A stretch of DNA of 38,578 bases from Octopus sinensis (taxonomy: Eukaryota): positions 1-38,578 of the forward strand of contig NW_021835834.1 of the NCBI RefSeq assembly GCF_006345805.1. The letters run 5' to 3'. Shown piece after piece: positions 4,841-37,498 of this stretch; position 1 is the stretch's first letter; each line of letters starts with the position of its first letter. A program made the translations under genes and the position numbers. The notes beneath the pieces were generated by a model. That model was not told the DNA's origin. It was given only the letters and a program-made list of their open reading frames with translations, and did no database searches.

Positions 4841-4981
4841 CATATTATATATACTTTATACTATATATATAAATCAACAGCAAAGTAACAATACCTCATT
4901 CTTTCTTCTTATCAGTTACCGGGGGGGGGGGGGGGGCCTTATGTGTGTGTGTGTGTGTCTTTGTGTCAGTATTGACAACTG

Positions 4982-12960: not shown

Positions 12961-14318
12961 TCTTAATGTTAATCTGATTTGGATAATGCACATACCCTTT
13001 AAATATAAACAAAATATAAATAACACAAAATATATTTTAAATGTGTCTTTATTGAAAAAATCAAAAATATATTGACATGATTTAAATGTAAATGATATGC
13101 TTTTATTTGTATTAATACACATATTTAAATACACATGATTTAAATGTAAATGATATGCTTTTATTTGTATTAATACACATTTTTTAAACACGCATACACA
13201 GAGAGAAAGCATTACATATACATTTGAAACCTGGCCTGGATTTTAGGAAAGTCTCTGGAGTTATTTATAAATTATTTTAAAGCCATTCTTTGAAAAATGG
13301 TATCACAGAAGTTTAATGAGAATCATTCAGATCTATCTATTTGTTCCGCAAATCCTGTAATAAAAGTGTAGTATTTAAAATTATAATTGAAGATATTTAT
13401 GTGAAACCAATAAGCACACACACACACAGATATGCTCCACTGACTTTGTCTCATCATAGATTTCAGAAAAACGAAAATTTCTACTAATTCCTTTCAGATT
13501 GTAATTATATCGGAATTTAATATGAAAAAATAAATCGGTGGGATACGTACTAACACAAATCCCATTTTTTGGCAGAAAATTTTGTCGCATCAAATTCCAG
13601 TATAAAAAGAATCTACACCATCTGAAGTGTATTTGTAGAAAATTTCCTTAAAAAATATAGATTTTTGTGAAAGTCATGAGGCAAGTCTTTGGAGCATTCA
13701 TGTGTAGATGTGCCTCAGGTATTGCCCCTGGGTGGTTACGATGTGTCAAGGTGCATGCATTACCTGAATATCCACAATAAATATGAGTTGTATTAAATTA
13801 TAATCACAGATATATGTGTGTATGGGGGAAGGGGTCTTTGTGTCTGTGTTTGTCTTCCCTCCCCACTACTTGACAACCGGTGTTGGTGGGTTTATGTCCC
13901 TGTAACTTAGCAGTTTCACAAAAGAGATCAATAGAATAAGTACAAGGCTTCAACAAAAAAACATTTCTTCCAGGCAGTGCCCCAGTATGGCAATAAATAC
14001 ACATCAAGTAGGAAACTGCCTGGAGCGTGATCTTTCTGAGGTGGAAACTGTGTGGAAGCCCCTGGTCTATGTGTGTGTGTGTCTTTGTGTTTGTTCCCCC
14101 CACCACATGAGCAGGGTTTTTGAAAAAATGCTGCTAAACCAAGGATGATGATGAAGGTGTATATAATATGGAAGGAATTTAGCAGAAACCAAATATGCTA
14201 CATCAAATGTGTTACATCATAAGGCACAAAAAGAAAATGACTCTCCCCAGACACAACAGAATATGTTAATGCAATCATTGAAAGTCTATAAGAAGAAAAA
14301 TAAAAAAACATAGCAGTC

Positions 14319-14919
14319 TTATGCTGTAACCGGTGGATTCTGGTTTTTCATACAAGATATCCTGCGGGTGACACGGTTCATGATAGAAATGTAAAGACGC
14401 CATTTGGGTATGATACAGAAGATTATGAGAAGGATGTTTACAAGAACAAGTACAGAAACGATGACTACGGCATGGATGGAAGCACTCCGTTGGTTACGAC
14501 GATGAGGGTTCCGGTTGATCTGAATCAACGGAACAGCCTGCTCGTGAAATTAACGTGTAAGTGGCTGAGCACTCCACAGACACGTGTACCCTTAACGTAG
14601 TTCTCGGGGATATTCAGCGTGACACAGAGAGTGACAAGGCTGGGTTCCTTTGAAATACAGGTACAACAGAAACAGGAAGTAAGAGTGAGAGAAAGTTGTG
14701 GTGAAAGAGTACAGCAGGGATCACCACCATCCCCTGCTGGAGCCTCGTGGAGCTTTAGGTGTTTTCGCTCAATAAACACTCACAACGCCTGGTCTGGGAA
14801 TCAAAACCGCAATCCTATGACCGCGAGTCCACTGCCTTAACCACTGGGCCATTGCACCTCCACGACTACGGCATAGGTGGATATGCATGTTCCTGATCCA
14901 TTAGCTTCAAACCCAGTAG
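14319..14919 (-). pseudogene. Duplicated terminal transmembrane exon (copy A), interrupted by a SINE
   Basis: Acceptor ttcatcttttgcAG at 14921-14920, phase 1. Without the SINE it reads (A)TGFEANGSGTCISTYAVVIVSVLVLVNILLIIFCIIPKWRLYISIMNRVTRRISCMKNQNPPVTA*. With the SINE it stops at 14839-14837. Confidence 0.75.
14474..14863 (-). mobile_element. tRNA-derived SINE family B2 with an 11-bp TSD
   Basis: The TSD gactacggcat is at 14463-14473 and 14864-14874; head GGTGCAATGGCCCAGTGGTTAAGGCAG...GGTTTTGATTCCC. Confidence 0.92.
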
Positions 14920-17073
14920 CTGCAAAAGATGAACAAGAAAACATATACTTTTTGTATTTAAGCAAAGATAGTAATATCAATAAGGCTGAACCCTTTTGAT
15001 CCCAACCTGCTCAAAACCACCCTTGTTTTTATTGTATGAATTCCCTGTTTTGAAGAGATCTAAAGTAAAACCTTCCATCAAGGCTTCAAATAAACTTGTG
15101 TTCCAAACACTAGCTTAGTAAGGACGAGGTTATTTCATTGAATTCTTTACTATTTCCAAAATTTATTGAAACAAAGGCAATGCATTTCAGCAGAAATATG
15201 GTAAGAAAAGGATTAACACACACAATTATCTTAAGACTATTATGTCTAACTGATTAAATGACCCCCTTCAGATCAGTCCATCATTTAGAAAGGTTACGTA
15301 GTATTAACAAGGGGGACTGACTTCTCAACACAAAAAATGGATGGTCAACAGATCAGTCCATCATTTACCAGGGGCAGCATATACATTTACCCGTTATTTA
15401 AGCATAATTAATTTCCTCGTTATTCAAACAGAAACTGAAACTTTCTTGTTTATTAAATTAGATGCAAACTCTGCATGAGGCTTCCTAACATTTTTGTGTA
15501 ATTAAATTTTGTGTATTGGTGTAATTTTTCATGCTGAATCTTAGGAGATAATTCACTTTTTCCACAAAAATATTAAAATAAGCTTCAGGGCTTTAAAGTT
15601 TGATCATTTTTACCCAGTCAGAAAACGGGATTTGGAAGCTGTCATTTTGTGCATGGCTGCACATGTTGTGAACTGTAAACAAATGAAATATTGTTGGAAT
15701 TCTGCTTTATGCATCCCATAAAACCCCTTAAGACATTTTTATTTTTATTTTTTGGAATCTTCAGAAAATTTTAGTGAATTTGCATTCTACACACAAAAAT
15801 TCATACAGTTATGCAAACACAAAACAAAATGCATGATTTGAGACCTATTTAGCTGTTATTTTTAGCACATCTGATGATCACTTCATACTGCATATGTTTT
15901 AAGCATTTGAAAACAGAGAAAAAGAACACATGGTAAGCAACTTGGCTTGTTGTTATGGAAACAAAAATTGTAGATATTGAAGTGAAAGCCAAGCAGAAAT
16001 GATCTTAGTTTTACTAATTAATTAAACGACTTCAGTCTAACTTCACAGGAATTTAGTTTACATCACAGGTAATGGTCGAGCCTGATAAGGTACGATTTTT
16101 GACAAGGATTTACGATTGTTTACACAGCAATAAGATTTTTTTTTCAACAAGTTTCTTCCTACCACTTAGTCTTTCAAATTTTCACCTGATTACTTTTAAA
16201 AAAATATAGTTCTGATGTAGTTTTGGATACTGATAATGAAAATCACAATCATTATTTCTAAAAACAAATAATAAAAAAGTTACATGCACTTAAAGTTAAG
16301 TAATTTTAGCCAATCGAAATCATCCATTGTTCACATATTGCTATTGCCATGGAGATTAACACAAACATAACTATTATGTGGTCTCTTGACTTGTTAGAAA
16401 TAGCTTTCAGAAAAAAATCACATTTTTTGGCAGAAAATTTTGTCACATCAAATTCCAGTATAAAAAGAATCTACACCATCTGAAGTGGATTTGTAGAAAA
16501 TTTCCTTAAAAAATATAGACTTTTGTGAAAGTCATTGGAGCATTCATGTGTAGATGTGCCCCAGGTATTGTCCCTGGGTGGTTACTATGTGTCATGGTGC
16601 ATGCATTACCTGAATATCCATAATAAAAATAAATTGTATTCAATTATAATCACAGACATATGTGTGTATGGGGGAAGGGGTCTTTGTGTCTGTGTTTGTC
16701 CTCCCTCCCCACTACTTGACAACAGGTGTTGGTGGGTTTATGTCCCTGTAACTTAGCAGTTTCGCAAAAGAGATCAAAAGAATAAGTACAAGGCTTCAAT
16801 AACAAAAAATTTCTTCCAGGCAGTGCCCCAGTATGGCCATAAATTGGGAGTGAAATGTGTTGATAACAATTAGCAACAAGTAGGAAACTACCTGGAGGGT
16901 GATCTTTCTGAGGTGGAAACTGTGTGGAAGCCCCTGGTCTATGTGTGTGTGTGTCTTTGTGTTTGTACCCCCCACCACTTGAGCAGGGTTTTTGAAAAGA
17001 TGAGGCTAAACCAATGATGATGATGAAGGTGTATATAATATGGAAGGAATTTAGTAGAAACCAAATATGCTAA

Positions 17074-17300
17074 TGACTTGACTTGACAGCATTCACCCGG
17101 GGTGGGCTGAGCTGGCTTCATTCATCCTCAATGCTGCATCTCTCACAAACGCTGACCAGACCTGGCGATTTGAGGCTCACGACCATGTGATCTCCAACCA
17201 CTCCTTATTCCAGCAGCAAATGCCATAGATGTGGGGGCCTAGGTTGGGTTCCAGATCAGCCTTGACTGTCATCAGCCAGGTTTTTCGTTGTCCAATACCC
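17074..17300 (-). mobile_element. RTE-clade LINE 3' end fragment with a (CAAGT)n tail, present only in copy B
   Basis: Minus strand reads GQRKTWLMTVKADLEP...NRQVWSAFVRDA and ends ...TGTCAAGTCAAGTCA. Confidence 0.7.
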
Positions 17301-17386
17301 TTCAAATATTCCTCATGTATATCGCAAAATATGCTAAAGCAATCATTGAAATTCTATAAGAAAAAAAATCACAAAACATAGCATTC

Positions 17387-17586
17387 TTACGCTGTAGCCG
17401 GTGGATTCTTGTATCTCTTGCGAGATATCCACTTGTTGACACGGTTCCTGATCCAAATGAAAGGTTGGCATTTGAATATGATACAGAAGATTATGAAGAT
17501 GGCTACAAGACCAAGTACAGAAATGACGACATAGATATGTATGCTGGTTCTTGATCCATTAGCTTCCAAACCTTTTGTTTCTTCAT
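17387..17586 (-). CDS. Terminal exon of a single-pass receptor-like gene: stalk, transmembrane helix and ~28-aa basic cytoplasmic tail
   Basis: Acceptor ttcatcttttgcAG (17588-17587), phase 1; (D)EETKGLEANGSRTSIHIYVVISVLGLVAIFIIFCIIFKCQPFIWIRNRVNKWISRKRYKNPPATA*. Hydrophobic run of ~22 aa followed by K/R-rich residues. Confidence 0.8.
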
Positions 17587-18289
17587 CTGCAAAAGATGAA
17601 CAAGAAAACATATACTTTTTGTTTTTAAGCAAAGATAGTAATATCAATAAGGCTGAACCCTTTTGATCCCAACCTGCTCAAAACCACCCTTGTTTTTATT
17701 GTACGAATTCCCTGTTTTAAAGAGATCTAAAGTAAAACCTTCCATCAAGGCTTCAAATAAACTTGTGTTCCAAACACTAGCTTAGTAAGGACGAGGTTAT
17801 TTCATTGAATTCTTTACTATTTCCAAAATTTATTGAAACAAAGGCAATGCATTTCAACAGAAATATGGTAAGAAAAGGATTAACACACACAATTATCTTA
17901 AGACTATTATGTCTAACTGATTAAATGACCCCCTTCAGATCAGTCCATCATTTAGAAAGGTTACGTAGCATTAACAAGGGGGACTGACTTTTCAACACAA
18001 AAGTGGATGGTCAACAGATGAGTCCATCATTTACCAGGGGCAGCATATACATTTACCCGTTATTTAAGCATAATTAATTTCCTCGTTATTGAAATAGAAA
18101 CTGAAACTTTCTTATTTATTAAATTAGATGCAAACTCTGCACGAGGCTTCCTAACATTCTTGTGTAATTAAATTTGGTGGCTCAAACAAAATGTTAACAA
18201 ATTCTAGCATTGAAAATGGCAGGTGTAAAGAATTGTGAGGTGAGATAATATTGAGGGTTACGGGGAAGGCAAAAGGGGGTCATTTCAAA

Positions 18290-18683
18290 TCTTTATATAT
18301 AAATGTGAAGTTGTGTGTCTGTCTCCTACGATTTAGATTCCTAACTACTCCCACATTTTGCGGTGCAGTGTAACCAAAAGCAGGTATCTTATAGTCGTGA
18401 TTCATATCGAGCCCTTCTGGTTATTAGCGCGTGTCTACGATGAGTCTACGATTTTAAAATATATTACCATCATTTTTTCCCATTTTTGATGCATTTTTTT
18501 GCTATTATATAAGGTAAGTAACTCTCTAAAAATGTATTATTAAATCTCAGAACGTAAAAAGCTACAGTAACACCCCCCTTTGTGGTTAGCCATTTTGAGA
18601 TGGCTATTATACTTTACATCTCTAAAAATACTTATATAGTTATTTCCCTTACAAACCCGAGCAACACCGGGCGATACTGCTAG
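18290..18683 (+). mobile_element. Non-autonomous Helitron (~390 bp)
   Basis: Begins TC after an A, ends with the hairpin CCCGAGCAACACCGGG and then CTAG, followed by T; canonical Helitron termini and A|T target. Confidence 0.85.
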
Positions 18684-18813
18684 TTGTAAATATATCTGTA
18701 AAATAAATATAACCATTATCCTATAAGCTTTCATTAAGCAAAACGTAAATCTGTTGCTAAAATAGATAATTAGTAAATATATATCCTGCAACTGATAGAA
18801 GGATTATACAGAA

Positions 18814-19186
18814 CTAGCATTATCGCCCGGCGTTGCTCGGGTTTGTAAGGGAAATAACTATAAAGCATTTTTAGAGAGTTATAGCCAAAAAATAGAAAAA
18901 AAATGAAGGTAAATTTTTTTTGAGAGTTAAAACGGTCGAGTTGCGTCATCTAGACAGTCTGTGGTTTGTGTTTCTGATTCTCGACCCCATGTCGAATTTA
19001 TCGATTTTTTTCAGAACTGGGGAAACTTTTCAAAATTTTCTCTGCATTAGTTTTGAATTATGACATTGGGCTATGTGTGTGTTAAGTTTAATCAGAATCG
19101 GTTGAAAGCCGTGGTCAGGGTGAGGGTACAACCTAACAGACACACAGAAACACACACAGACAAACTGCCGTTTATATAGAGAGAGA
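18814..19186 (-). mobile_element. Non-autonomous Helitron with a different 5' body and the same 3' end
   Basis: CTAG plus CCCGGCGTTGCTCGGG on the plus strand at 18814; the other end reads TCTCTCTATATAAACGG on the minus strand. Confidence 0.75.
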
Positions 19187-19433
19187 CTGGTAAAGACATT
19201 GGTTTCTGTCAATTTTTGCTCTTACTAATATTTTTCTCTTTGAATTCTTTCACAAACAAGAAACTAGAAAATGCCAAATCCTTTCTATAACAATTAAATA
19301 GTACAATAGACAGACGATCCTCAAGAACGAAGCTAATTAATCCATTCAGTCAACTACAAATATATCCCACCAAGGGTCATAATGAAAACTTCTTAACATG
19401 AAAACAAAAAAAAACTAATTCAGAAGAAACTTT

Positions 19434-20395
19434 GGATCTTTTCGGTTTGAACGGCAGTTTTTTCGAGCGGTGTCATATGAAATTGTCACCCATAATTATG
19501 ACCCTAGTATCGATCCATTGCATTTCAATCTATTTTAGGGTTAGGGGTGGGGGGAAGGGTATCTTTTTTTCTACAGAAATGTAAATAAACCCAATCTGTT
19601 TCTTAAACGAGGGACATATTCATACGGCACAGAATGTTTTTTTTTTACCTCAATAGACGTGATTGATTGGTTGAAATTGCAGAAATTGAAGAAAAAAAAC
19701 AACAAATATCTTACAAACAATAGAATTTTCTCAATAAAGCCAAGAGAAAAAGATATTTTATAAACACATTCTACCAGTATACGAAGTTTAAAAGTGTTCA
19801 GTTATGTGGAAATTAATTAAAAAAACTGCCGGTCAAACCGCAAAGATCCTATTTCTTAAATGAGGGACATATTCATACGGTGCAGAATGATTTTTTACGT
19901 CAATAGATGTGATTGATTGGTTGAAATTGCAGAAATTGAAGAAAAAAAACAACAAATATCTTACAAACTAGAGAATTTTCTCAATAAAGCCAAGAGAAAA
20001 AGATGTTTTATAAACACATTCTACCAGTATACGAAGTTTAAAAGTGTTTAGTTACCTGGAAATTATGTTAAAAGAACTGCCGGTCAAACCGAAAAGACCC
20101 AAATCTCTTACAAACTATAGAATTTTCTCAATAAAGCCAAGAGAAAAAGATGTTTTATAAACACATTCTACCAGTATACGAAGTTTAAAAGTGTTTAGTT
20201 ACGTGGAAATTATTTTTAAAAACTGCTGTTCAAACCGACAAGACCCAAATATCTTACAAACTATAGAATTTTCTCAATAAAACCAAGAGAATAAGATGTT
20301 TTATAAACACATTCTACCAGTATACGAAGTTTAAAAGTGTTTAGTTACCTGGAAATTATGTTAAAAAACTGCCGGTCAAATGGAAAAGATCCAAA
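19434..20395. mobile_element. GGATC-TIR MITE followed by three tandem re-duplications of its right part
   Basis: TIR at 19434; right-TIR copies end at ~19850, ~20100, ~20245 and ~20393. Confidence 0.85.
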
Positions 20396-20479
20396 ATTTT
20401 TGTAATTGTTCAGTTACAAACTGTGATTTTGATTAAGTATTAGAAAAATATTTGCATGATGATGATGACAACGGGGGGG

Positions 20480-21470
20480 GAGGGGCAACGGCAGCGCGTG
20501 AGCTGCCAGAATCCTTTTTATGCTGGATGAAATGCTTAGCAGTTTTTCAGCTGTTGTCACATTCTGAGTTCAAACTCCACCAAGGTCTTTCATCCTTTCA
20601 GGGTCGATAAATTAAGTACCCATTAAACACTGAGGACAAAGTAATTGTCCCCGCTCCACAAAATTCAGGCCTTGTACCTATGGCAAGGGTCTTACTATCA
20701 TCATCATCATCATCGAAGGTGTGAGCTGACAGAACTATTACTGCACCAGAAAAAAGGTCCTGTGGCAAGCTGGCAGAAACATTAGCACGCCGGGCAAAAT
20801 GCATAGCCGTGTTTTGTCTGCCGTTATGTTCTGAGTTCAAATTCCGCCAAGGTGGACTTTGCCTTTCATGCTTTCGGGGTCGATAAATTAAGTACCAGTT
20901 ACACACTGGGGTTGATGTAATCAGCTTAATACCTATGTCTGTCCTTGTTTGTCCCCTCTGTCTTTTAGGCCCTTGTGGGTAGTAAAGAAATAGGTATTTC
21001 GTCTGCCGCTACATTCATCATCATCATCATCGTTTAACGTCCGTTTTCTGCGCTAGCACAGGTTGGATGGTTCGACCAGGACCTGGGAAGCCAGGGGCTG
21101 CACCAGGCTCCAGTCTGATCTGGCAGTGTTTCTACAGCTGGATGCCCTTCCTAACGCCAACCACTCTGCGAGTGTAGTGGGTGCTTTTTACGTGCCACCA
21201 GCACAGGTGCCAGGGGAGTCTGGCATCGGCCACGATCGGTTGGTGCTTTTAACGTGCCAAGGCGGCGCTGGCATCGGCCAATTCTGAGTTCAAATTCCGC
21301 CAAGGTGGACTTTGCCTTTCATCCTTTCGGGGTCGATAAATTAAGTGCCAGTTACGCATTGGAGTTGATGTAATCAGCTTAATACCTATGTCTGTCCTTG
21401 TTTGTCCCCTCTGTCTTTTAAGCCCTTGTGGGTAGTAAAGAAATAGGTATTTTTTTTTTACCCATTAACC
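20480..21470 (+). mobile_element. Cluster of SINE family C fragments (TTCTGAGTTCAAATTCCGCC...CTTTCATCCTTTCGGGGTCGATAAATTAAGTACCAG) with a nested (GAT)n-tailed element at ~21016-21280
   Basis: The motif recurs at ~20565, ~20830 and ~21283, and again at 23235-23770, 33265-33530 and 38410-38578. Confidence 0.8.
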
Positions 21471-21651
21471 CCTGAGTTCAAATACTGCTAAGGTCAGCTT
21501 TGCCTTTCATTCCTTTGGGGTTGATGAAATAAAGGACCGACTAAATATACTCAAATTAATGGAATTGAGGAACCTCTTCCACATGAAATTCCTGACCTTG
21601 CACCAAAATTAGAATTATTATTGTTATTATTAGCAAAAGCGATTTCCTTAC

Positions 21652-21900
21652 CTTTCATCACCAAAGTATAACTTTCTGAGCAGAAATAGTAGTCACAAAA
21701 ACTCCAAGTCAAATCTTGTTCAGTGACATTATGGATCAAAAGAGTTGAGCTGTTACCCTTGTAATGAACTTCATAATTTCCTTTATTCTCACAAGTATCT
21801 ACACATTGAAGATAATTAAACTCGTTAACCCACAAAACTGGTGTTCCAATCAAGCTTGATTCGATATGAATAGTAGCATTTTTTCCTAATACAACTGGTG
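21652..21900 (-). CDS. Extracellular domain exon 2 (249 nt, phase 1-1), probable atypical Ig-like domain
   Basis: Acceptor tttttatttcAG, donor GTAAGG. PVVLGKNATIHIESSLIGTPVLWVNEFNYLQCVDTCENKGNYEVHYKGNSSTLLIHNVTEQDLTWSFCDYYFCSESYTLVMK; sequons NAT, NSS, NVT; homologous to 27199-27444. Confidence 0.85.
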
Positions 21901-22123
21901 CTGAAATAAAAAGGTAAAAGTCAATATTATTGATTTGTTTCCCATATGAAAGATTTCTGTTTTTTTTTGTTTTTTTTCATCATCATCGCCAATTTAACAT
22001 TTATTTTTCCCTACTTGGGATCAGAGTTTTCTTTGTGCACAATTGGATGCACTTCCTGTCCTAATAGGTACTCGGACTGCATAGGCAGTCCAATATCGCC
22101 TCCGCAGGTGGCTGCGGAGGTAA

Positions 22124-22417
22124 TCTTTATATATAAAACTAAAGTTGTGTGTGTGTCTGTCTACTCCGATTTAGATTCCTAACTACTCCCACATTTTGCG
22201 GTGCAGTTTAACCAAAAGCGGGTATCTTATAGTCATGATTCATATCGAGCCCTTCTGGGTTTTAGCGCGTGTCTACGATGAGTCTACGATTTAAAAAAAA
22301 ATTTACGTTCATTTTTCCGCATTATTAACGCATTGTTGCTCAGTTTATGTAAGGGAAGTAACTCTCTAAAAATGCTTATATAGTTATTTCCCTTACAATG
22401 CCGAGCGATACTATTAG
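22124..22417 (+). mobile_element. Non-autonomous Helitron, internally deleted
   Basis: TCTTTATATATAAAA start; body matches 18290-18683; degenerate 3' end (TTAG). Confidence 0.75.
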
Positions 22418-22859
22418 TAGAACATAAAATTCTATCAAGGGTCATAGCGACCTTTGACAAGAAAGAGTTTGCTTTCCTCTTCACGGGCCCCAACTTGTCG
22501 GTGCAGAGTTGTCTGCAGGTGGCAAGGCAACTTGCTTGGGGGCTCCGATGAGGAGGATTCACCTTATTTCTATTGATATTTTTGTATTCGAGGGCTTGTT
22601 GTGTTCAATTGGATGTTCTTCCTGTCCTAATATCCCAGTTTGTTGAATAACAAAGAGCCTGGACATGCTTTACCTAGTAAACTGGAAACAAACGACCCCA
22701 TATAAACGAGCCTTTTGTTTACTAAGATTGTGCAGAGTAAGATACACCCTTGTCACCCATAAAGTTAATCAAGTTGTACAGAAATTTCTATGCCACTGAA
22801 ACCAGGAAACTGGCCCTTATGAGCCTGGCATCGCTTGAGAAGGAAATCAAGTTGTAGTC

Positions 22860-23165
22860 AGATGTTACAAGCATAAAGGAGAGGCCTTAAATGTGATTGA
22901 CCAGGTCAAGAAAGTTATAATTAATTAGAAACAGAATTAGACTTGATGAGATGCAGTTTGATTTTCTGCCAGGAAGAAGGACTACTGCTGCCATCTACTG
23001 AGTAAAACAACTTCAGATGTATTTAGCTAAAAAATAAACCATTTCACTTGGCATTTGTTGACTTGGAGACAGCTTTTGACAGGATATGGAGATCTCTGAG
23101 GAAGCTAGGAGTTGACAAATGGCTTGTGAGGGCTGGATACGCCATGTATAGGGGTGCTGTAAGAG
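22860..23165 (+). mobile_element. Degenerate RTE-clade RT fragment
   Basis: ...LDEMQFDFLPGRRTT...AFVDLETAFDRIWRSLRKLGVDKWLVR, with stops. Confidence 0.8.
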
Positions 23166-23189
23166 TTAATACAGCAGACGAAGGTGACG

Positions 23190-23770
23190 AGCTGGCAGAA
23201 CCGTTAGCATGCCGGGCGAAATACCTAGCTGTATTTCGTTTGCCGTTACGTTGTGAGTTCAAATTCCGCCGAGGTCGACTTTGCCTTTCATCATTTCGGG
23301 GTCAATAAATTCAGTACCAGTTACGCACTGGGGTCAATATAATCGACTTAATACCTTTCTCTGTCCTTGTTTGTCCCCACTGTGTTCAGCCCCTTTTGGA
23401 TAGTGAAGAAATAGGTATTTCGTCTGCCGTTATGTTCTGAGTTCAAATTCCGCCAAGGTCAACTTTGCCTTTAATCCTTTCGGGGTCGATAAATTAAGTA
23501 CCAGTTACGCACTGGGGTCAATATAATCGACTTAATACCTTTCTCTGTCCTTGTTTGTCCCCTCTGTGTTTAGCCTCTTGTGGGCAGTAAAGAAATAAGT
23601 ATTTCGTCTGCCGTTATGTTCTGAGTTCAAATTCCGCCAAGGTCAACTTTGCCTTTAATCCTTTTGGGGTCGATAAATTAAGTACCAATTATGCACTGGG
23701 GTCGATGAAATCGACTTAATTTGTTTGTTTGTCCCCCCTGTGTTTAGCCCCTTGTGGGTAACAAAAAGAA
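23190..23770 (+). mobile_element. Tandem SINE family C copies (~180-bp period, three units)
   Basis: gtatttcgtctgccgttatgttctgagttcaaattccgcc repeats at ~23230, ~23415 and ~23600. Confidence 0.8.
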
Positions 23771-24099
23771 ATAAATACAGCAGTGAATTTAAGTTCCGGT
23801 AAGATTTCACCAAGGTTCCGTTCTCAGTACCTTCCTATTCATCAGTGTGCAGGCACATGGCCTAGTGGCTAGAGTTGCGGACACACAGTCGAGGGATCAC
23901 GGGTTCGAATCTCAGACTGGGCGATGTATGTGCTTATGAGCAAAACACCTAAGCTCCACGTTGCTCTGGCAGAAGGTAATGGCAAACTGATCAGAAAAGG
24001 AAATAAAAAAGTAACCAAAAACTCTGAGTTAAGGGAAAGAAACAGAAGACAGAATTGGAAAGAGTGTCTAGCGTAAAAGGAGTTTGTAAATCCATTTAC

Positions 24100-24138
24100 C
24101 GTTTTGGGTCATCTTATAAATTTCTATTCTTGTCGAAT
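24100..24138 (-). CDS. 39-nt linker micro-exon (phase 1-1)
   Basis: catcttttacAG|ATTCGACAAGAATAGAAATTTATAAGATGACCCAAAACG|GTAAAT gives (N)STRIEIYKMTQN(A) and joins both domain exons in frame. Confidence 0.75.
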
Positions 24139-24249
24139 CTGTAAAAGATGAAAACAAAAAAAGATGACAACAAAGAAAAAAGATGAAAACAAAAAACGAT
24201 GTAAACAAAAATTTTTGAGTTTCAGATTTTACATTCAATCAACAGGATT

Positions 24250-27165
24250 CATCATCATCATCATCATCGTTTAACGTCCGTTTTCCATGCTAGCATGGGT
24301 TGGACGGTTCAACTGGGGTCTGGGAAGCCAGGAGACTGCACCAGGCTCTAATCTGATCTGGCAGTGTTTCTACAGCTGGATGCCCTTCCTAATGCCAACC
24401 ACTCCATGAGTGTAGTGGGTGCTTTTTACGTGCCACCAGCACAGGTGCCAGGCGAGGCTGGCAATGGCCACGATCGGATTGGTGCTTTTTATGTGCCACC
24501 GGCACAGGTGCCAGGCGAGGCTGGCAATGGCCATGATCGGATTGGTGCTTTTTATGTGCCACCGGCACAGGTGCCAGGCGAGGCTAGCAATAGCCATGAT
24601 CGGATTGGTGCTTTTTACGTGCCACCGGCACAGGTGCCAGGCGAGGCTAGCAATGGCCATGATCGGATTGGTGCTTTTTACGTGCCACCGGCACAGGTGC
24701 CAGGTGAGGCTGGCAATGGCCATGATCGGATTGGTGCTTTTTACGTGCCACCAGCACAGGTGCCAGGCGAGGCTGGCAATGGCCACGATCGGATTGGTGC
24801 TTTTTATGTGCCACCGGCACAGGTGCCAGGCGAGGCTGGCAATGGCCATGATCGGATTGGTGCTTTTTATGTGCCACCGGCACAGGTGCCAGGCGAGGCT
24901 AGCAATAGCCATGATCGGATTGGTGCTTTTTACGTGCCGCCGGCACAGGTGCCAGGCGAGGCTAGCAATGGCCATGATCGGATTGGTGCTTTTTACGTGC
25001 CACCAACACAGGTGCCAGGCGAGGCTGGCAATGGCCATGATCGGATTGGTGCTTTTTATGTGCCACCGGCACAGGTGCCAGGCGAGGCTAGCAATAGCCA
25101 TGATCGGATTGGTGCTTTTTACGTGCCACCGGCACAGGTGCCAGGCGAGGCTAGCAATGGCCATGATCGGATTGGTGCTTTTTACGTGCCACCGGCACAG
25201 GTGCCAGGTGAGGCTGGCAATGGCCATGATCGGATTGGTGCTTTTTACGTGCCACCAACACAGGTGCCAGGTGAGGCTGGCAATGGCCATGATCGGATTG
25301 GTGCTTTTTACGTGCCACCAACACAGGTGCCAGGTGAGGCTGGCAATGGCCATGATCGGATTGGTGCTTTTACGTGCCACCGGCACAGGTGCCAGGTGAG
25401 GCTGGCAATGGCCATGATCGGATTGGTGCTTTTTACGTGCCACCAACACAGGTGCCAGGTGAGGCTGGCAATGGCCATGATCGGATTGGTGCTTTTTACG
25501 TGCCACCAACACAGGTGCCAGGTGAGGCTGGCAATGGCCATGATCGGATTGGTGCTTTTTACGTGTCACCAACACAGGTGCCAGGTGAGGCTGGCAATGG
25601 CCATGATCGGATTGGTGCTTTTTACGTGCCACCGGCACAGGTGCCAGGTGAGGCTGGCAATGGCCATGATCGGATTGGTGCTTTTTACGTGCCACCAACA
25701 CAGGTGCCAGGTGAGGCTGGCAATGGCCATGATCGGATTGGTGCTTTTTACGTGCCACCACACAGGTGCCAGGTGAGGCTGGCAATGGCCATGATCGGAT
25801 TGTGCTTTTTACGTGTCACCAACACAGGTGCCGGTGAGGCTGGCAATGGCCATGATCGGATTGGTGCTTTTTACGTGCCACCAACACAGGTGCCAGGTGA
25901 GGCTGGCAATGGCCATGATCGGATTGGTGCTTTTTACGTGTCCACACACAGGTGCCAGGTGAGGCTGGCAATGGCCATGATCGGATTGGTGCTTTTTACG
26001 TGCCACCAACACAGGTGTCAGGTGAGGCTGGCAATGGCCATGATCGGATTGGTGCTTTTTACGTGCCACCAACACAGGTGTCAGGTGAGGCTGGCAATGG
26101 CCATGATCTGATTGGTGCTTTTTACGTGCCACCGGCACAGGTGTCAGGTGAGGCTGGCAATGGCCATGATCGGATTGGTGCTTTTTACGTGCCACCAACA
26201 CAGGTGCCAGGTGAGGCTGGCAATGGCCATGATCGGATTGGTGCTTTTTACGTGCCACCAACACAGGTGCCAGGTGAGGCTGGCAATGGCCATGATCGGA
26301 TTGGTGCTTTTTACGTGTCACCAACACAGGTGTCAGGTGAGGCTGGCAATGGCCATGATCGGATTGGTGCTTTTTACGTGCCACCAACACAGGTGCCAGG
26401 TGAGGCTGGCAATGGCCATGATCGGATTGGTGCTTTTTACGTTCCACCAACACAGGTGCCAGGTGAGGCTGGCAATGGCCATGATCGGATTGGTGCTTTT
26501 TACGTGCCACCAACACAGGTGCCAGGTGAGGCTGGCAATGGCCATGATCGGATTGGTGCTTTTTACGTGTCACCAACACAGGTGTCAGGTGAGGCTGGCA
26601 ATGGCCATGATCGGATTGGTGCTTTTTACGTGCCACCGGCACAGGTGCCAGGTGAGGCTGGCAATGGCCATGATCGGATTGGTGCTTTTTACGTGCCACC
26701 AACACAGGTGCCAGGTGAGGCTGGCAATGGCCATGATCGGATTGGTGCTTTTTACGTGCCACCAACACAGGTGCCAGGTGAGGCTGGCAATGGCCATGAT
26801 TGGATTGGTGCTTTTTACGTGCCACCAACACAGGTGCCAGGCGAGGCTGGCAATGGCCACGATCAGATGGTGCTTTTTAGGTGCCACCAGCACAGGTGCC
26901 AGGCGAGGCTGGCAATGGCCATGATTGGATTGGTGCTTTTTACGTGCCACCAACACAGGTGCCAGGCGAGGCTGGCAATGGCCACGATCAGATGGTGCTT
27001 TTTAGGTGCCACCAGCACAGGTGCCAGGCGAGGCTGGCAATGGCCATGATTGGATTGGTGCTTTTTACATGCTACCAACACGGAGGCCAGCTGACCCGGC
27101 GCTGGCAACGACCACGTTCTGATGGTCCTCTTACGTGCCACCGGCACTGGTATCACAACTACAAT
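24250..27165 (-). mobile_element. (GAT)n-tailed retro-element (RTE-like 3' end) hosting the 63-bp array
   Basis: (CAT)n-CGTTTAACGTCCGTTTTCCATGCTAGCATGGGTTGGA...GGATGCCCTTCC matches 21016-21260 and the reverse-oriented copy at 34760-34970. Confidence 0.75.
24418..27080. repeat. 63-bp GC-rich minisatellite, about 42 units
   Basis: Unit GGTGCTTTTTACGTGCCACC(G/A)(G/A)CACAGGTGCCAGG(T/C)GAGGCTGGCAATGGCCATGATCGGATT; 21-aa periodicity in the ORF track. Confidence 0.97.
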
Positions 27166-27198
27166 TTCCAAAAGTATCATTATAATTCATTTCCTTAC

Positions 27199-27444
27199 TG
27201 TTTATTTTCAGATGAAATATCCCTCCTTCGACGTTGTCGTCTAGAAATTTCCAAGTCAAACATTTGTTAGTTATTCTCCTCATCCAAAGAGAAGACTTGT
27301 TGCCACTCTGACTCACTTGAAATTCAGTACCTTTGGCACATGATCTATCGCACTCGTATCTCTTATTGCCACAATACCACACAGCCGGTCTCTTCATGTT
27401 TTCAATTTCAATAGAGAGGGTGGCACTTCCTCCGAGTATTTCCC
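27199..27444 (-). CDS. Extracellular domain exon 1 (246 nt, phase 1-1), probable atypical Ig-like domain
   Basis: Acceptor ttctttatttcAG, donor GTAAGG. (G)EILGGSATLSIEIENMKRPAVWYCGNKRYECDRSCAKGTEFQVSQSGNKSSLWMRRITNKCLTWKFLDDNVEGGIFHLKIN. Confidence 0.85.
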
Positions 27445-27474
27445 CTGAAATAAAGAAATCAAGATGTTTACTTC

Positions 27475-27780
27475 CTAGTTACATGGGTCCAGGTTCAGTC
27501 TCACTTAGTGGCACCTTGGGCAAGGGCGTGCCACTATAGTCTTAGGACAACCAAGGCCTTGTGAGCAGATTTGGTAGGTGGAAACTGAAAGAAGACTGTC
27601 GTGTGTCTGCATGTGTGTGAGTGTGTCAGTGTATGTGCGTGGTTGTGTGTGTTTCAGCAAAGCAGTTCAGCAAAGGAGACCAACAAAATAAGTTCCAGAC
27701 TGAGGTCAATTCATTTGACTAAAAATTCTTCAAGGTAGTGCCCCAGCATGGCCATAGTCTAATGACTGAAACAAGCAAGT
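27475..27780 (+). mobile_element. Diverged SINE family A copy
   Basis: catgggtccaggttcagtc...ggcaccttgggcaag...gactgaaacaag. Confidence 0.75.
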
Positions 27781-27872
27781 GACCATCATGCTTGAATGGA
27801 TCAGAGTTTTCATTTGTAACAGTAGGATGCTCTTCCTGCCACTAACCTCCATCTGTTTCCCAGTCTATAGAT

Positions 27873-28091
27873 CAGTGGTTTTCAACCAGGGTTCCGCAGA
27901 ACCTTAGGGTTCCACCAGTACAGTCCAGGGGTTCCGCAAGAAGTTACAATACTGCTAAAATTGGCAGTGATTTTTAATTCTCCTGTGCAGATATGTGTGC
28001 ATAAGACAATTAAATTATTGCACAGGGGTTCCTCGAGCCAGTGGAATGTTTCCTTGGGGTTCCGCTCCAGCAAAAAGGTTGAAAAGCCCTG
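27873..28091. mobile_element. hAT (Charlie-like) MITE
   Basis: TIRs CAGTGGTTTTCAACC / GGTTGAAAAGCCCTG; near-perfect 8-bp TSD ctatagat / ctatagaa. Confidence 0.85.
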
Positions 28092-28374
28092 CTATAGAAT
28101 AACAAACAGCCTGGATATGTTTTATGCAGGGAACTGGGAACAAACGACACCGTATAAATGGGCCTTTTGTTTACTAAGATTGTGCAACACAACAAGATTT
28201 TGTGGTGAACTTCAAGCAAATGACATCGCTGGGAAAACCATATTGTTGCAAGTAGCCATCTTTAAATAAGGGGCCAATTTGTGGTGACTGGCAATATGAT
28301 GTAATGTCGTATTGCCGAAGAAATATCATTGTCGTTTTTCCATTGGTTAATATAACTGCTCATATAAGGATTCT

Positions 28375-28665
28375 GTGGAGGCGCAATGGCCTAGTGGTTA
28401 GGGCAGCGGACTCGCGGTCGCAGGATTGCGGTTTCGATTCCCAGACCGGGCGTTGTATGTGTTTATTGAGCGAAAACACCCAAAAAGCTCCACGAGGCTC
28501 CGGCAGGGGGTGGTGATCTCTGCTGTACTCTTTCACCACTCTTTCTTCTGTCGGCCTGCTCGCTTAGCCAGCGGGGTGGCGTCATTCGAAGGCTAAAACA
28601 ATGTGAACGCATTGTGACCAGCGATGTGTAACAACATCTGATGGTCTGGTCGGTCACGTGATATA
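28375..28665 (+). mobile_element. SINE family B1 copy
   Basis: GGAGGCGCAATGGCCTAGTGGTTAGGGCAGCGG...GGTTTCGATTCCC; reverse complement of 4535-4840. Confidence 0.88.
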
Positions 28666-29023
28666 AAGATTCTAAAAGTTACTTACAGAATATTGGTATG
28701 TAATTTCGATTCTTTAAAGTCAAGTTGAGCAGTTATAAAAACCCGGGATTTTGGGATGTAATTAAACCCCACGACACTCACTCCTTTGAGACATTGGGGA
28801 TTTTTCATGCCATGTCCAAGGAAAATCCAACAATATAGTAAAATAAGTTTGTGGCATATTTTAACTTCTAAAACACCATATCTACCCAGTGCTGCCCTCT
28901 AGTGCAATGGTTCTCAACCATTCTTCACCTATGGACCCCTTTGTTTCCTATTATACTCAGGTGGACCCTTATAACCATTTCTGGTTTAAAACATCCTAGT
29001 ATATTCTTATAATCAAATATTTT

Positions 29024-29431
29024 GGATCTTTTTAGTTTGAACGGCAGTTTTTTCTAGCGGTGTCATATGAAATTGTCACTCATAATTATGACCCTAGTAT
29101 CGATCTATTGCATTTCAATCTGTTTTAGGGTTAGGGGTGGGGGAAGGTATCTTTTTTTTCTTCACAAATGTAAATAAACCCAATCTGTTTTTTAAACGAG
29201 GGACATTTTCATACGGCACAGAATGTTTTTTACCTCAATGGACGTCATTGATTGGTTGAAATTGCAGAAATTGAAGAAAAACAACAAATATCATACAAAC
29301 TATAGAATTTTCTCAATAAAGCCTAGAGAAAAAGATGTTTTATAAACACATTCTTCCAGTATACGAAGTTTAAAAGTGTTTAGTTACCTAGAAATTATTT
29401 TTAAAAACTGCCGGTCAAACCGAAAAGATCC
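29024..29431. mobile_element. GGATC-TIR MITE with an 8-bp TSD (hAT-like), nested in an older hAT-type MITE (~28905-29575)
   Basis: TSD aatatttt at 29016-29023 and 29432-29439; the duplicate near 30630 shows the empty site (aatattattagg). Confidence 0.9.
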
Positions 29432-29868
29432 AATATTTTTAGGAATTATATAACAAAATTGTTAAAATATTTTGTGTACTGTAAAAATATAACCCATTAA
29501 TTGTACATAAATTTTAACAACAAAATCCTATGTGGACCCCCAACAGCCATATTGACCCCGGTTAAAAACCACTATTCTAGTGGATTCCCCGATGAGTGAT
29601 TCTGGCTCATTAGCCTTTATCAATGGGAAACTCCAGAGAAAGATAAACCTGAGCAGATTCAAAGCTGTTGTTTTATCTAAAGAGCAGTCACTATCAGTGA
29701 CTGAGTTGTGCTAGTGAACTGCCTGGTCGGAATAAATGTTTTAAGAAATCAAAAAACACAAATGAAACAGTGAATAAAATTTATGAGTTGAGTTAAAGAA
29801 ATAGAAGAGAGAATTGAAAAAGTTGTGTCTAGTTTAGAAGGCGAAAGGGGATAAGGTAATCCACTTAC

Positions 29869-29925
29869 CACTTTGGGTGAAATTTTTAACTCCTTCTGAT
29901 CTCAAATCGTTTGCACTTGCCAAAT
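29869..29925 (-). CDS. 57-nt linker exon, copy 1 (phase 1-1)
   Basis: catcttccacAG|ATTTGG...CAAAGTG|GTAAGT gives (D)LASANDLRSEGVKNFTQS(G); in frame with exon 27444. Confidence 0.72.
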
Positions 29926-31067
29926 CTGTGGAAGATGAATACAAGGACTTTTGAATTTCAGATTTTACATTCGATCAACAAGATTGTTTCCTATTTCTGT
30001 TACAATAATTAAATAGTAATTAACACGAGTAGATCTAATTACACATTATATACTGTACCACTGGTATGTTACTCCATACTCCTATTAGCAATAATCTACA
30101 TAAACCTAACTTATACACTTAATCTAAGAAGCTCACACTTATGAACCTTTCAGAAAATATACGCGTGATGAGTTTTTCGTACTTACCAGCACTAAGTTAT
30201 TTAAATGCACCCGAGCACTAAACATACTAGTCTAGCACACTACCCCCACCATAGCCTCTATGTCACGCTGGTGAGACCCATATATTTTATAATTATTGGT
30301 GCTACCTTGTTCATGGCTACTGTTTCTAGGATCCATGTTTCCAGGATTATTATTATTATTATTATTGTTATTTGTGCCCTAAGAGTGAAACTGCCAATCA
30401 TAAGTAATCCCTCTTTAGTTAAAATATGTTTGTGACATATTTTAACTTCTAAAGGCAAATTTACTGCATTTACCAAAGAGAAGGATTTCTCACTGATGGT
30501 AAAAGGTGTGAAAACACCATATCTGCCCAGTGCTTACCTATAACACAATGCAACCCTTTTGATTTCTATTTCACTCAGGTGGACCCTTATAACCATTTCA
30601 TGTTTTAAAAAATCCTATTTTTATAATTAAATATTATTAGGAATTGTATTTAAAAAACTGATTAAAAATTTGGTGTACTGTAAAGCTAAAACCAATTAAT
30701 TGTACATAAATTTTAACAACAAAATCCTATATGGACCCCCAACAGCCATACTGACCCCGGTTAAAAACCACTATTCTAGTGGATTCCCCGATGAGTGATT
30801 CTGGCTCATTGGCCTTTATCAATGGGAAACTCCAGAGAAAGATAAACCTGAGCAGAGTCAAAGCTGTTGTTTTATCTAAAGAGCAGTCACTATCAGTGAC
30901 TGAGTTGTGCTAGTGAACTGCCTGGTCGGAATAAATGTTTTAAGAAATCAAAAAACACAAATGAAACAGTGACTAAAACCTATGAGTTAAGTAAAAGAAA
31001 TAGAAGAGAGATTTGAAAAAGTTGTGTCTAGTTTAGAAGGCGAAAGGGGATAAGGTAATCCACTTAC

Positions 31068-31124
31068 CACTTTGGGTGAAATTTTTAACTCCTTCTGATC
31101 TCAAATCATTTGGACTTGCCAAAT
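31068..31124 (-). CDS. 57-nt linker exon, copy 2 (phase 1-1)
   Basis: catcgtccacAG...GTAAGT intact; (D)LASPNDLRSEGVKNFTQS. Confidence 0.62.
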
Positions 31125-31469
31125 CTGTGGACGATGAATACAAGGACTTTTGAATTTCAGATTTTACATTCGATCAACAAGATTGTTTCCTATTTCTGTT
31201 ACGATAATTAAATAGTAATTAACACGAGTAGATCTAATTACACATTATATACTGTACCACTGGTATGTTACTCCATACTCCTATTAGCAATAATCTACAT
31301 AAACCTAACTTATACACTTAATCTAAGAAGCTCACACTTATGAACCTTTCAGAAAATATACGCGTGATGAGTTTTTCGTACTTACCAGCACTACGTTATT
31401 TAAATGCACCCGAGCACTAAACATACTAGTCTAGCACACTACCCCCACCATAGCCTCTATGTCACGCTG

Positions 31470-31960
31470 GGATTCATGCCTCTTCTCCTTATCTCCTCAA
31501 AGACATACATCATCTCGAAAGAGTCCAGAAGCCGGCTACCCGCATGGTTCTTGGTCTCAAGCATTTGTCTTATGAAGAAACGCTGAAGACACTTGACCTT
31601 TATTCTCTAGAAAAACGACGACGCCATGGTGATCTCATTCTCGCTCACAACATCATAAGCGGAAAGTGTAACCTCTCGAAAGAGCTGTTCTTCACTCCGG
31701 CTCCAGAGCGTCGGCTGCAGGGTCACTCCGAAAAGCTCTATCTACGATGATTTCATCTCAATCAAAGGAGAGGAGCTTTCTCCGTCCGGGTTGCGGATCT
31801 GTGGAATAAGCTGCCGGACGAGATAGTGAAGATGCCGACGACCGCTCGGTTCAAAGTCTCTCTTGACCAGAAAAGGCCTGAACTCTTTGCATGAACACCA
31901 CCCTGTACATAACTCCATGTCCCCCTACATGGCCTTGCGCTTTTTGAACCAATAAAAATT
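31470..31960 (+). mobile_element. CR1-type LINE 3' end fragment
   Basis: VLGLKHLSYEETLKTLDLYSLEKRRRHGDLI...GHSEKL...FSVRVADLWNKLP, with one stop. Confidence 0.88.
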
Positions 31961-36081: not shown

Positions 36082-37498
36082 GGCGCAGGAGTGGCTGTGT
36101 GGTAAGTAGCTTGTCTACCAACCACATGGTTCCGGGTTCAGTCCACTGCGTGGCACCTTGGGCATGTGTCTTCTACTATAGCCTCGGGCCGACCAAAGCC
36201 TTGTGAGTGGATTTGGTAGACGGAAACTGAAAGAAGCCTGTCGCATATACGAGGGACGTTCAATAAGTAATGCCTCTGACCCACTTGCAGTTGTTTGATC
36301 TAGCTGAAATTTTGCATGTGCAATCATTTATATGGTCGCCCCCTTCTGCCATTGATGAGGCATCTGTCTGTCAAGTTGAGGCTGCCATTTTGGAAGATCG
36401 ACGCATAATTATTTGCCAAATAGCCCATGAGGTCAAGTTTAGTACCGGGTCTGTGGAAACTATCATTCATGACCATTTGCATATGCAAAAGGTGTCTGCC
36501 AGATGGATTCCCAGGTTGCTCACGCCTTTCCAGAAGCAAGAACGCGTCGAGTGCTCGAGGGTGAATTTGGAGATGTGCCAAGAAGATGAGTCAAAATTTT
36601 TCAAAAGACTGATTACACAGGATGAAACCTGGGTCCAGAGACCAAAGCCCAGTCAATGCAGTGGAAGCACCGTGACTCACCCCTCCAAAGAAGGCAAGGG
36701 TGCAGCCCTCTGCTGGCAAGGTCATGCTCACAGTCTTCTGGGACCAGGACGGAGTAGTGATGACAGATTTCCTGGCAAAGGGTACCACAATTGCAGGAGC
36801 CTATTATGCTTCACTTTTGAGGAAATTAAGAGAAGTTATCAAAATCAAGAGGCGGGGCAAGATCAGCAAAGGCATCCTCCTCCTGCAGGACAACGCTCCG
36901 GTCCACAACTCGCTTGTCGCCAGATCAGAAGCACAGGCGTATGGCTATGAACTCCTCCCCATCCCCCCTACTTTCCTGACCTTGCACCCTCTGATTTTCA
37001 CCTCTTCCAGCCATGAAGTTGTTTTTGAAAGGAAAGCGTTTCCCAGATGATGCAGCCTTGATTTCTGAAGTCACGTTGAGGTTGGAGGAACAAGCTGGGG
37101 TATTCTACAAAAACGGTCTCCAGAGCCGCATCAAACGATGGGAGAAATGCGTAACTCTGGGTGGTTCCTATGTAGAAAAAGACTAATAACTGTGCCAAGT
37201 TTCGTTGCTCTACTGCTATGGGAAGTGGGTCAGGGGCATTACTTATTGAACGCCCCTCGTATGTATATATATATAAGTGTGTGTATGTGTGTGTGTCTGT
37301 GTTTGTCCCCCTTGCATTGCTTGACAACCGATGCTGGTGTGTTTACGTCCCCGTCACTTAGTGGTTCGGCAAAAAGAGACCGATAGAATAAGTACTGGGC
37401 TTACAAAGAATAGTCCCGGGGTCGATTTGCTCGACTAAAGGGCGGTGCTCCAGCATGGCCGCAGTCAAATGACTGAAACAAGTAAAAGAGTAAAGAGT
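36082..37498 (+). mobile_element. SINE family A copy split by a mariner insertion
   Basis: 5' half at 36082-36247, 3' half at 37262-37498. Confidence 0.88.
36250..37259 (+). mobile_element. Mariner (DD34D) DNA transposon, internally deleted and frameshifted
   Basis: TIRs CGAGGGACGTTCAATAAGTAATGCC / GGCATTACTTATTGAACGCCCCTCG with TA on both sides; peptides WIPRLL, ITQDETWV, KVMLTVFWD, LLQDNAP, and across a frameshift PDLAPSDF. Confidence 0.95.

Follow-up and report, generated by a model that had tools for sequence, protein, structure and literature searches.

The stretch of DNA analyzed here, referred to as the window, comprises 38,578 nucleotides from Octopus sinensis (NCBI RefSeq assembly GCF_006345805.1, contig NW_021835834.1, positions 1 to 38,578). 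Its minus strand carries a spliced gene for a small protein with two immunoglobulin-like (Ig-like) domains, a single membrane helix and a short basic tail. The gene has relatives in several octopods, and the reading that is favored, by a modest measure, is that it encodes a type I membrane glycoprotein of an octopod Ig-like family, whose ectodomain would bind a ligand in adhesion or recognition. The gene is already annotated, without a name or a function, and is not a discovery in itself. What is newly defined is a compact domain signature that Pfam misses, the encoding of each domain by two exons, two cysteine subtypes and the restriction of the family, as sampled, to octopods.

Cephalopod surface receptors are poorly known, and this family has no assigned function. 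The signature provides a handle by which annotators could name dozens of "uncharacterized" octopus proteins. In addition, the family is small and tractable for experiments on immunity, adhesion or neural recognition.

Gene Structure

Six minus-strand exons can be read directly from the DNA between positions 17387 and 31124, each preceded by AG and all but the last followed by GT (Table 1). All are in phase 1, and together they form a single open frame. The original prediction, made from the DNA letters alone, had joined the same six exons, and the protein they encode is that of the RefSeq entry XP_036355964.1 (P0003, 299 aa), listed as "uncharacterized protein LOC115231405 [Octopus sinensis]". 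The gene extends further in both directions than had been predicted: the exon for the signal peptide was missed, and the RefSeq model splices on to a last coding piece beyond the transmembrane exon. The signal peptide exon was found by a tblastn search with the Octopus vulgaris orthologue (13/14 identical), and its boundaries, read as cag/ATG...TTTT/gtaagt, agree with the RefSeq product. By inspection, MDPLKLIFLFSWCF is a signal peptide, and the start of the gene lies outside 17387-31124. Among the predicted junctions, 29869/27444 is correct, and the second of the supposed linker exons starts at 29925.

Table 1. Exons of the Ig-like gene and related pieces in the window.
Feature	Position	Strand	Remarks
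Exon 1, coding part	33183-33141	minus	Start ATG and signal peptide MDPLKLIFLFSWCF; ends in phase 1
Mini-exon 1a	31124-31068	minus	57 nt, phase 1-1, LASPNDLRSEGVKNFTQS; AG/GT ends
Mini-exon 1b	29925-29869	minus	57 nt, phase 1-1, LASANDLRSEGVKNFTQS; its end encodes the first strand of domain 1
Domain 1 (D1) main exon	27444-27199	minus	246 nt, phase 1-1, EILGG...HLKIN; D1 type, Cys35 and Cys72
Mini-exon 2	24138-24100	minus	39 nt, phase 1-1, STRIEIYKMTQN; inter-domain link and first strand of domain 2
Domain 2 (D2) main exon	21900-21652	minus	249 nt, phase 1-1, PVVLGKNATIH...TLVMK; D2 type, Cys78 and Cys83; weak Pfam I-set match, E 8.6e-4
Transmembrane/tail exon, copy A	17586-17387	minus	200 nt including TAA; juxtamembrane sequon, helix IHIYVVISVLGLVAIFIIFCIIF, basic tail
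Transmembrane/tail exon, copy B	14919-14322	minus	Within a tandem duplication of ~2.9 kb; tblastn E 1e-11
Last coding piece of RefSeq model	14919-14907	minus	13 nt, ..A-YWV-stop; acceptor of broken copy B, other frame

The product had been described as a single-pass membrane protein with two related domains, and this description holds. BLASTP aligns D1 with D2 over 67 aa at 31% identity (E 1.5e-12), which makes them paralogues, and the earlier hand count of 22 identities in 82 ungapped positions was reproduced exactly. A tblastn search of the window, with both domains, the linker exons and the transmembrane exon as queries, gave no further domain copies, and the only additional match was a second, broken transmembrane exon. 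Nine N-x-S/T sequons are present, at residues 29, 48, 101, 134/135, 155, 197, 205 and 240. All are N-terminal of the helix at 246-268, as expected from the claim that sequons lie only outside the membrane.

The internal exons are all phase 1-1, a trait of the genes of the Ig superfamily. Whereas the usual Ig plan has one exon per domain, each domain here takes two, a mini-exon followed by a main exon of ~82 codons. Homology links the 39-nt mini-exon to the 57-nt ones, and both kinds encode a conserved Y-K-I-T-Q segment. Specifically, the product of mini-exon 1b forms a strand at residues 4-10 of the AlphaFold2 model described below and aligns with this segment of the family. Because the segment is modelled in the first strand of the domain, the mini-exons are part of the domains and not the linkers they had been taken for.

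The first mini-exon is present twice. A 1.2-kb tandem duplication (self-BLAST blocks 29432-30271 and 30630-31470, 96.6% identical) carries the 57-nt exon; mini-exon 1a is the upstream duplicate copy, and both copies are present in the RefSeq product. The same duplication is found in O. vulgaris, and the near-identical O. sinensis models P0004 and P0007 have one copy.

The 3' end of the gene can be read in two ways. If copy A of the transmembrane/tail exon is left unspliced, translation ends at the TAA at 17389-17387. The RefSeq model instead uses a donor whose GT follows 17391, and its product ends in ...PPATAYWV and not in ...PPATA-stop. This ending can be accounted for by the donor GC/GTAAGA at 17391/17390, which overlaps the TAA and would be joined to the acceptor at 14919. 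The pattern AG-N-TAY-TGG-GTN-stop occurs once in the window, compared with 0.02 matches expected by chance. Copy A also has an alternative acceptor 24 nt downstream, as reflected in isoform X2 (P0006) of the near-identical copy on the chromosome. At the D2 exon, read-through of the donor (window 21551-21651) would give a tail of the form GKEI(A/T)(F/S)ANNNNNNS..., which recurs in the models or contigs of P0007, P0012, P0027, P0034 and P0039. The recurrence reflects either conservation of the start of the intron or a genuine soluble isoform that arises by intron retention.

Annotation and Orthologue

The original prediction presented the gene as hidden, which is not the case. The O. sinensis gene has its RefSeq entry, and the gene of O. 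vulgaris is carried in the GenBank annotation of that species as an uncharacterised protein. A protein search with the spliced product retrieved this orthologue (P0001), with 87% identity over 99% of the query, and the single-sequence word-indexed search returned nothing else. The O. vulgaris locus has the same exon plan, and its noncoding DNA is 98.5% identical. In a literature search, no publication was found that contains the LOC identifiers or the accessions of the gene or its relatives, and general searches gave nothing specific.

The window itself is 98-99% identical along its length to the O. sinensis chromosome CM016885.1 at 19.12-19.15 Mb (L003). Because of this identity, it most likely represents an unplaced alternative haplotype of that region.

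An Unnamed Octopod Family

When 1.84 billion representative proteins were searched with HMMER (E <= 1e-3), 34 matches were obtained. About 28 of these are small proteins of 97-455 aa that are 40-60% identical to the query and possess a signal peptide, one to four domain units of ~94 residues, a helix and a short tail. A word-indexed protein search with an alignment of 29 family domains gave no matches, which reflects the limit of the index, since HMMER found 34. Twenty representatives were looked up, and 17 come from O. sinensis, O. vulgaris, O. bimaculoides or Argonauta hians; 15 are labelled "uncharacterized" or "hypothetical". The remaining three are unnamed Logan read assemblies. One of them, P0026, is encoded in full by a 1067-bp contig of run SRR3401912, which is an octopus meta-transcriptome (PMC11662614). 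Therefore, at least that member of the family is expressed and spliced. The family appears to be unnamed and, as sampled, confined to octopods, as had been supposed when the protein was called lineage-specific and assigned to no named family.

The paralogues share the organization of the gene in the window. The plan of signal, mini, domain, mini, domain and transmembrane exons recurs among them, for instance in P0011. In O. sinensis, members are found on the 21-Mb chromosome CM016885.1 at 5.5 (two tandem copies), 11.7, 12.3, 15.9, 19.0 and 19.1 Mb, and others are on another chromosome. The family is thus concentrated on one chromosome with local pairs and does not form one tight cluster.

Across the 29 aligned domains, Trp33 and Cys42 are invariant and Cys46 is present in 27, while Val54, Trp75, Asp79 and Leu89 are each conserved in at least 90%. 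The resulting signature is L-G-x2-T-L-x-I-x-I-P-N-M-K-R-P-V-V-W ... Y-E-C-D-x-T-C ... S-T-L-W-I-x-N-V-T ... W-x-F-x-D. Two further pairs of cysteines define mutually exclusive subtypes: Cys35 with Cys72 in 11 domains, the type of D1 in the window, and Cys78 with Cys83 in five, the type of D2. Because the members of each pair co-occur and the subtypes exclude each other, the alignment suggests one shared disulfide (Cys42-Cys46) and one that is specific to the subtype. Outside the domains, a juxtamembrane motif, F-K-x-P-P-Y-I-W-I-x-x-R-V-x-x-W-I-S, is conserved in a sub-family.

Some members depart from this plan. P0024, P0028, P0029, P0031 and P0035 form a sub-family in which one family domain is combined with a different Cys-rich domain of ~100 residues that has no Pfam match, and the member from Argonauta hians belongs to this group. 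P0033 (O. sinensis XP_036358517.1, "zinc finger protein 239-like") combines C2H2 zinc fingers with one family domain and is probably a chimeric gene model.

The Ig-Like Fold

The prediction of atypical Ig-like domains agrees with both structural and profile comparisons. An AlphaFold2 model of D1, made with the 29-domain alignment as input, possesses eight strands in a beta-sandwich (mean predicted local distance difference test score, pLDDT, 87.8; predicted template modelling score, pTM, 0.79). When this model was compared with the PDB by Foldseek, 28 matches had E <= 1e-3, and the top 50 listed were all Ig domains or Ig-containing chains with a probability of 1.0. Among those listed were titin M1 (E 1.6e-4, template modelling (TM) score 0.62), antibody chains, obscurin and twitchin. 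The model of the full-length protein (pLDDT 71) consists of a disordered stretch at 10-44 that corresponds to the duplicated mini-exon, two beta domains, the second with its strands at 143-216, and a helix at 240-263. In the PDB, chains with tandem Ig domains match this model best (E about 1e-7).

Profile comparisons provide further evidence. In hhalign, the profile of the 29 family domains aligned over 64 columns with an alignment of I-set domains taken from the giant proteins described below (85.5% probability, E 5.7e-6), in a register in which the B strand, the C-strand Trp and the E-strand L-x-I-x-x-V coincide. The Trp33 found in all 29 domains is thus aligned to the Trp of the I-set, and the strand C Trp typical of Ig domains is kept. 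Against PDB sequences the family profile matched only Ig proteins, six of them and weakly, with marginal E-values. The six HMMER matches from outside the family are giant proteins (E 1.3e-19 to 3.7e-6). In the three that were scanned with Pfam, 17-24 I-set domains were counted, and a look-up of one of the three identified it as a lamprey obscurin-like protein (E 1.3e-19). The family profile aligns to each repeat of the giant I-set proteins in a constant register, and the scores are sums over many weak domains.

The same alignments show where the domains depart from the I-set. The canonical B-strand Cys falls on an Ile of the family, and the column contains Ile in 19 domains, Thr in six, Val in three, Ala in one and Cys in none of the 29, so the replacement noted in the original prediction holds throughout the family and the canonical B-F disulfide is absent. 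This disulfide is typical of the Ig superfamily and is not obligatory, since some accepted Ig domains lack it. The C-x3-C pair that had been described as an addition is the E-C-D-x-x-C sequence, a conserved six-residue insertion after strand C' relative to I-set domains. The W-x-F that had been equated with the canonical Y-x-C does replace that region, but it falls one residue earlier in hhalign, and the positional equivalence is uncertain. Overall, the predicted structures, which are models and not solved structures, and the profile alignments place the domains among divergent Ig-like domains nearest to the I-set, as a variant without the canonical disulfide.

A Proposed Function

The combination of a signal peptide, two Ig-like domains, a helix and a short tail argues, as far as the sequence goes, for a surface binding protein. 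The mature product would consist of a short disordered N-terminal stretch, which arises from the duplicated mini-exon, two tandem Ig-like domains, a single helix and, last, a basic tail of ~30 residues. The domains retain the C-strand Trp and the E-strand S-T-L-x-I-x-N-V-T and lack the canonical B-F disulfide. The nearly invariant Y-E-C-D-x-T-C loop is inserted after strand C', and each subtype has its own second Cys pair. The family itself has expanded through duplication of exons and genes, largely on one chromosome. At the cell surface, the putatively glycosylated ectodomain may bind a ligand on another cell, on a particle or in the matrix, resulting in adhesion or recognition. The tail, KCQPFIWIRNRVNKWISRKRYKNPPATAYWV, contains by inspection no immunoreceptor tyrosine-based inhibitory (ITIM), activation (ITAM) or switch (ITSM) motif and no T-x-Y-x-x-V/I, and the helix contains no charged residue. 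Because the tail has no recognizable signalling motif, a signal, if there is one, would need a partner and may pass through a protein that contacts the transmembrane and juxtamembrane segment.

A number of observations weigh against this reading. The structural matches of D1 have only moderate TM-scores (about 0.6), with root-mean-square deviations of 4-6 A. Pfam gave no match at its curated cut-off for the protein or for any of the 29 single domains; with I-set (PF07679), the whole protein scores 19.8 bits (E 8.6e-4) compared with a gathering cut-off of 23.7, only four of the 29 single domains match Ig_3 or I-set, and these weakly, and the paralogue P0008 scores 23.6 bits. The restriction to octopods, with the absence of the family from squids, cuttlefish and Nautilus, is relative to the sequences in the protein library. 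The cluster of the product at 90% identity contains only NCBI-derived sequences. Lastly, one base is missing from the D1 exon of the chromosomal copy (AAATTT to AAATT, L003 about 9990, CM016885.1), which shifts the frame of D1. Because of this deletion, the RefSeq model of that copy, LOC115225279, starts late. Either the assembly is in error at this point or the allele is null.

Comparison with Known Ig-Like Proteins

The I-set domains of titin, obscurin and twitchin (PF07679) are the closest comparison. The D1 model has the beta-sandwich of these domains, with strands A to G including C', and titin M1, obscurin and twitchin Ig26 are its best structural matches. In contrast, the octopus domains score below the Pfam cut-off, lack the B-strand Cys in all 29 cases, carry the six-residue E-C-D-x-x-C insertion and have W-x-F-x-D in place of the Y-x-C-x region. 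Unlike the muscle proteins with I-set domains, the octopus protein would be extracellular and glycosylated, and each of its domains is split into a mini-exon and a main exon.

The CD2, CD58 and SLAM proteins resemble the octopus protein in being type I proteins with two Ig-like domains and heavy predicted N-glycosylation. Their N-terminal domain lacks the canonical disulfide. A further likeness is the octopus sub-family in which the family domain is paired with a Cys-rich domain. CD2 chains are among the six weak profile matches, but these are not significant (E 0.09 and 0.31). Moreover, the octopus tail contains neither the ITSM, the tyrosine switch of SLAM, nor the proline-rich motif of CD2, and the octopus domains are paralogues of each other and not a V plus C2 pair. 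The likeness is therefore one of architecture only.

Hydractinia Alr1 and Alr2 and the Biomphalaria polymorphic transmembrane cluster, the analogies offered in the original prediction, are lineage-specific single-pass proteins encoded by clustered gene families, and the ectodomains of Alr are Ig-like. The hallmark of both systems is extreme allelic polymorphism of the ectodomain. In this respect, the octopus gene differs: between the sister species, identity is 99.6% in D1 and 99.2% in D2. The Hydractinia and Biomphalaria proteins were compared with it by their general features. Myelin P0, the sodium-channel beta subunits and basigin/neuroplastin likewise combine between one and three Ig-like domains with a single helix and a short, basic tail. 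These small membrane proteins act through their ectodomains and through helix-helix contacts with partners. The octopus protein resembles them by architecture only, with no detectable relation in sequence.

Evolution Between Octopus Species and Alternative Explanations

The evolutionary pattern of the gene bears on the possibility, raised in the original prediction, that it encodes a receptor for immunity or allorecognition. Such a receptor would belong to a family that diversifies rapidly, and its variable ectodomains would recognize non-self and drive a response. Several properties of the family would fit such a role. It is lineage-restricted and expanded, its members vary from one to four domains, RefSeq lists at least 12 isoforms for one paralogue, exons and genes have been duplicated recently, and the best relatives in O. 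bimaculoides are only about 46-53% identical. In addition, divergence in the transmembrane/tail exon far exceeds that of its flanks, and the ratio of nonsynonymous (dN) to synonymous (dS) divergence there is at least 1. The ectodomain, however, is nearly invariant. Between O. sinensis and O. vulgaris, the ectodomain exons differ at 6 of 691 coding nucleotides, and 4 of these differences change a residue, compared with a divergence of 1.5% in the noncoding DNA (98.5% identity over 13.2 kb). Apart from the 1-bp deletion, the D1 exon is the same in the two O. sinensis haplotypes. The variable ectodomain of a polymorphic receptor was thus not seen in a comparison of two haplotypes and two species only. 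The tail and helix also lack the immune motifs and the charged residue that were looked for by inspection, and the literature search for the locus and its accessions gave no report of expression or challenge. Because the ectodomain is nearly invariant, an immune or allorecognition role is disfavored and is considered unlikely.

The unusual evolution of the gene lies instead in the transmembrane/tail exon. Compared with O. vulgaris (L001 about 23437-23615), this exon is 79.8% identical with 28 gap columns, while its upstream flank is ~98% identical. Among three versions of the exon, namely copy A, copy B without its insertion and that of O. vulgaris, dN is 0.25-0.36 and dS is 0.12-0.21. The O. 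vulgaris exon has 57% identity with that of the paralogue P0032 and 47% with copy A. Two simple explanations were rejected. Neutral decay of a pseudo-exon does not account for an exon that is ~20% diverged between flanks that are 2-9% diverged, and pure positive selection does not account for a dS that is raised as well. Gene conversion from paralogues or the retention of old exon lineages are possible causes. Such divergence between sister species, limited to one exon, is an oddity of population-genetic interest.

This exon also bears on the proposal that the gene encodes a neuronal or sensory surface protein. Its role would be in adhesion and wiring or, as an auxiliary subunit, in contacting a channel or receptor via its transmembrane and juxtamembrane segment, in the manner of small short-tailed subunits with Ig domains. 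The small size, the Ig-like domains and the short, motif-free tail would suit this role. The juxtamembrane motif shared by a sub-family and the placement of the unusual evolution in the transmembrane/tail exon rather than the ectodomain are also consistent with it. Nevertheless, no sequence relation to known auxiliary subunits was detected, and the nearest matches outside the family are generic I-set chains. The orthologous transmembrane exon, at only 47% identity, further argues against a fixed partner, and this proposal seems no more probable than an immune role.

A broader interpretation may also be considered. In this interpretation, which is quite speculative, the family is an octopod system of recognition receptors that diversifies by exons and not by alleles, through the number of domain exons, through isoforms, and through swapping or conversion of the transmembrane/tail exon. 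If true, one conserved ectodomain would be joined through this exon to different partners in the membrane. Cephalopods would then possess a lineage-specific repertoire for immunity, self/non-self discrimination or neuronal identity, comparable in role to other families specific to invertebrate lineages.

A different concern is that the gene is a young copy that is decaying or dispensable, weakly transcribed at most, and on its way to becoming a pseudogene. The D1 frameshift in the chromosomal copy, the partial state of the other near-identical O. sinensis models and the lack of a transcript-derived member in the 90% cluster of the product would all be expected of such a copy. The same is true of the second transmembrane exon, which is broken by an insertion and into which the 3' end of the RefSeq model runs. 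On the other hand, the frame is intact across seven exons both in the window and in O. vulgaris, every splice site is kept, and both domains retain the signature residues of the family, so that decay is quite improbable. A surface binding protein that functions in adhesion or recognition is preferred over this explanation. Although interspersed repeats and the remnants of transposons abound in the window, the notion that the open frames align by chance or that the exons are those of a transposon is already refuted by the orthologue, the RefSeq entry and a paralogue family of about 28 clusters with the same exon plan, as well as by the similarity of D1 and D2 and by self-BLAST, in which no exon overlaps a repeat family.

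Duplications and Repeats in the Window

The second copy of the transmembrane/tail exon lies in a duplication that is seen in self-BLAST as the blocks 13557-15513 and 16415-18179. Copy B is split by a 390-bp insertion (14863-14474) flanked by an 11-bp direct repeat, ATGCCGTAGTC, which is a target-site duplication. ARAGORN finds no tRNA in the window, and the insertion is therefore named only as SINE-like (short interspersed nuclear element). Relatives of this insertion are present at 28375-28546 and 4657-4841.

Other than the gene described here, the window contains only repeat and transposon remnants. Among these is a remnant of a mariner-type transposase at 36700-37050 on the plus strand (Pfam Transposase_1, E 6e-17). 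An open reading frame of 230 aa at 10770-11462 on the minus strand has no Pfam match and resembles the tail of a retroelement. An interspersed repeat of ~400 bp occurs more than 15 times in the window (e.g., 1178-1589, 2106-2518 and 5363-5765).

Two tandem repeats differ in copy number between the species. A GC-rich satellite with a 63-bp unit is present in 42 copies at 24418-27081, within the intron that separates the D1 exon from mini-exon 2. In the O. vulgaris locus this satellite spans only about 540 bp (L001 16051-16590), a strongly different copy number. A 143-bp tandem repeat is present in three copies each at 7567-7995 and 8686-9120 of the window and in ~15 copies in O. vulgaris (L001 30192-32313).

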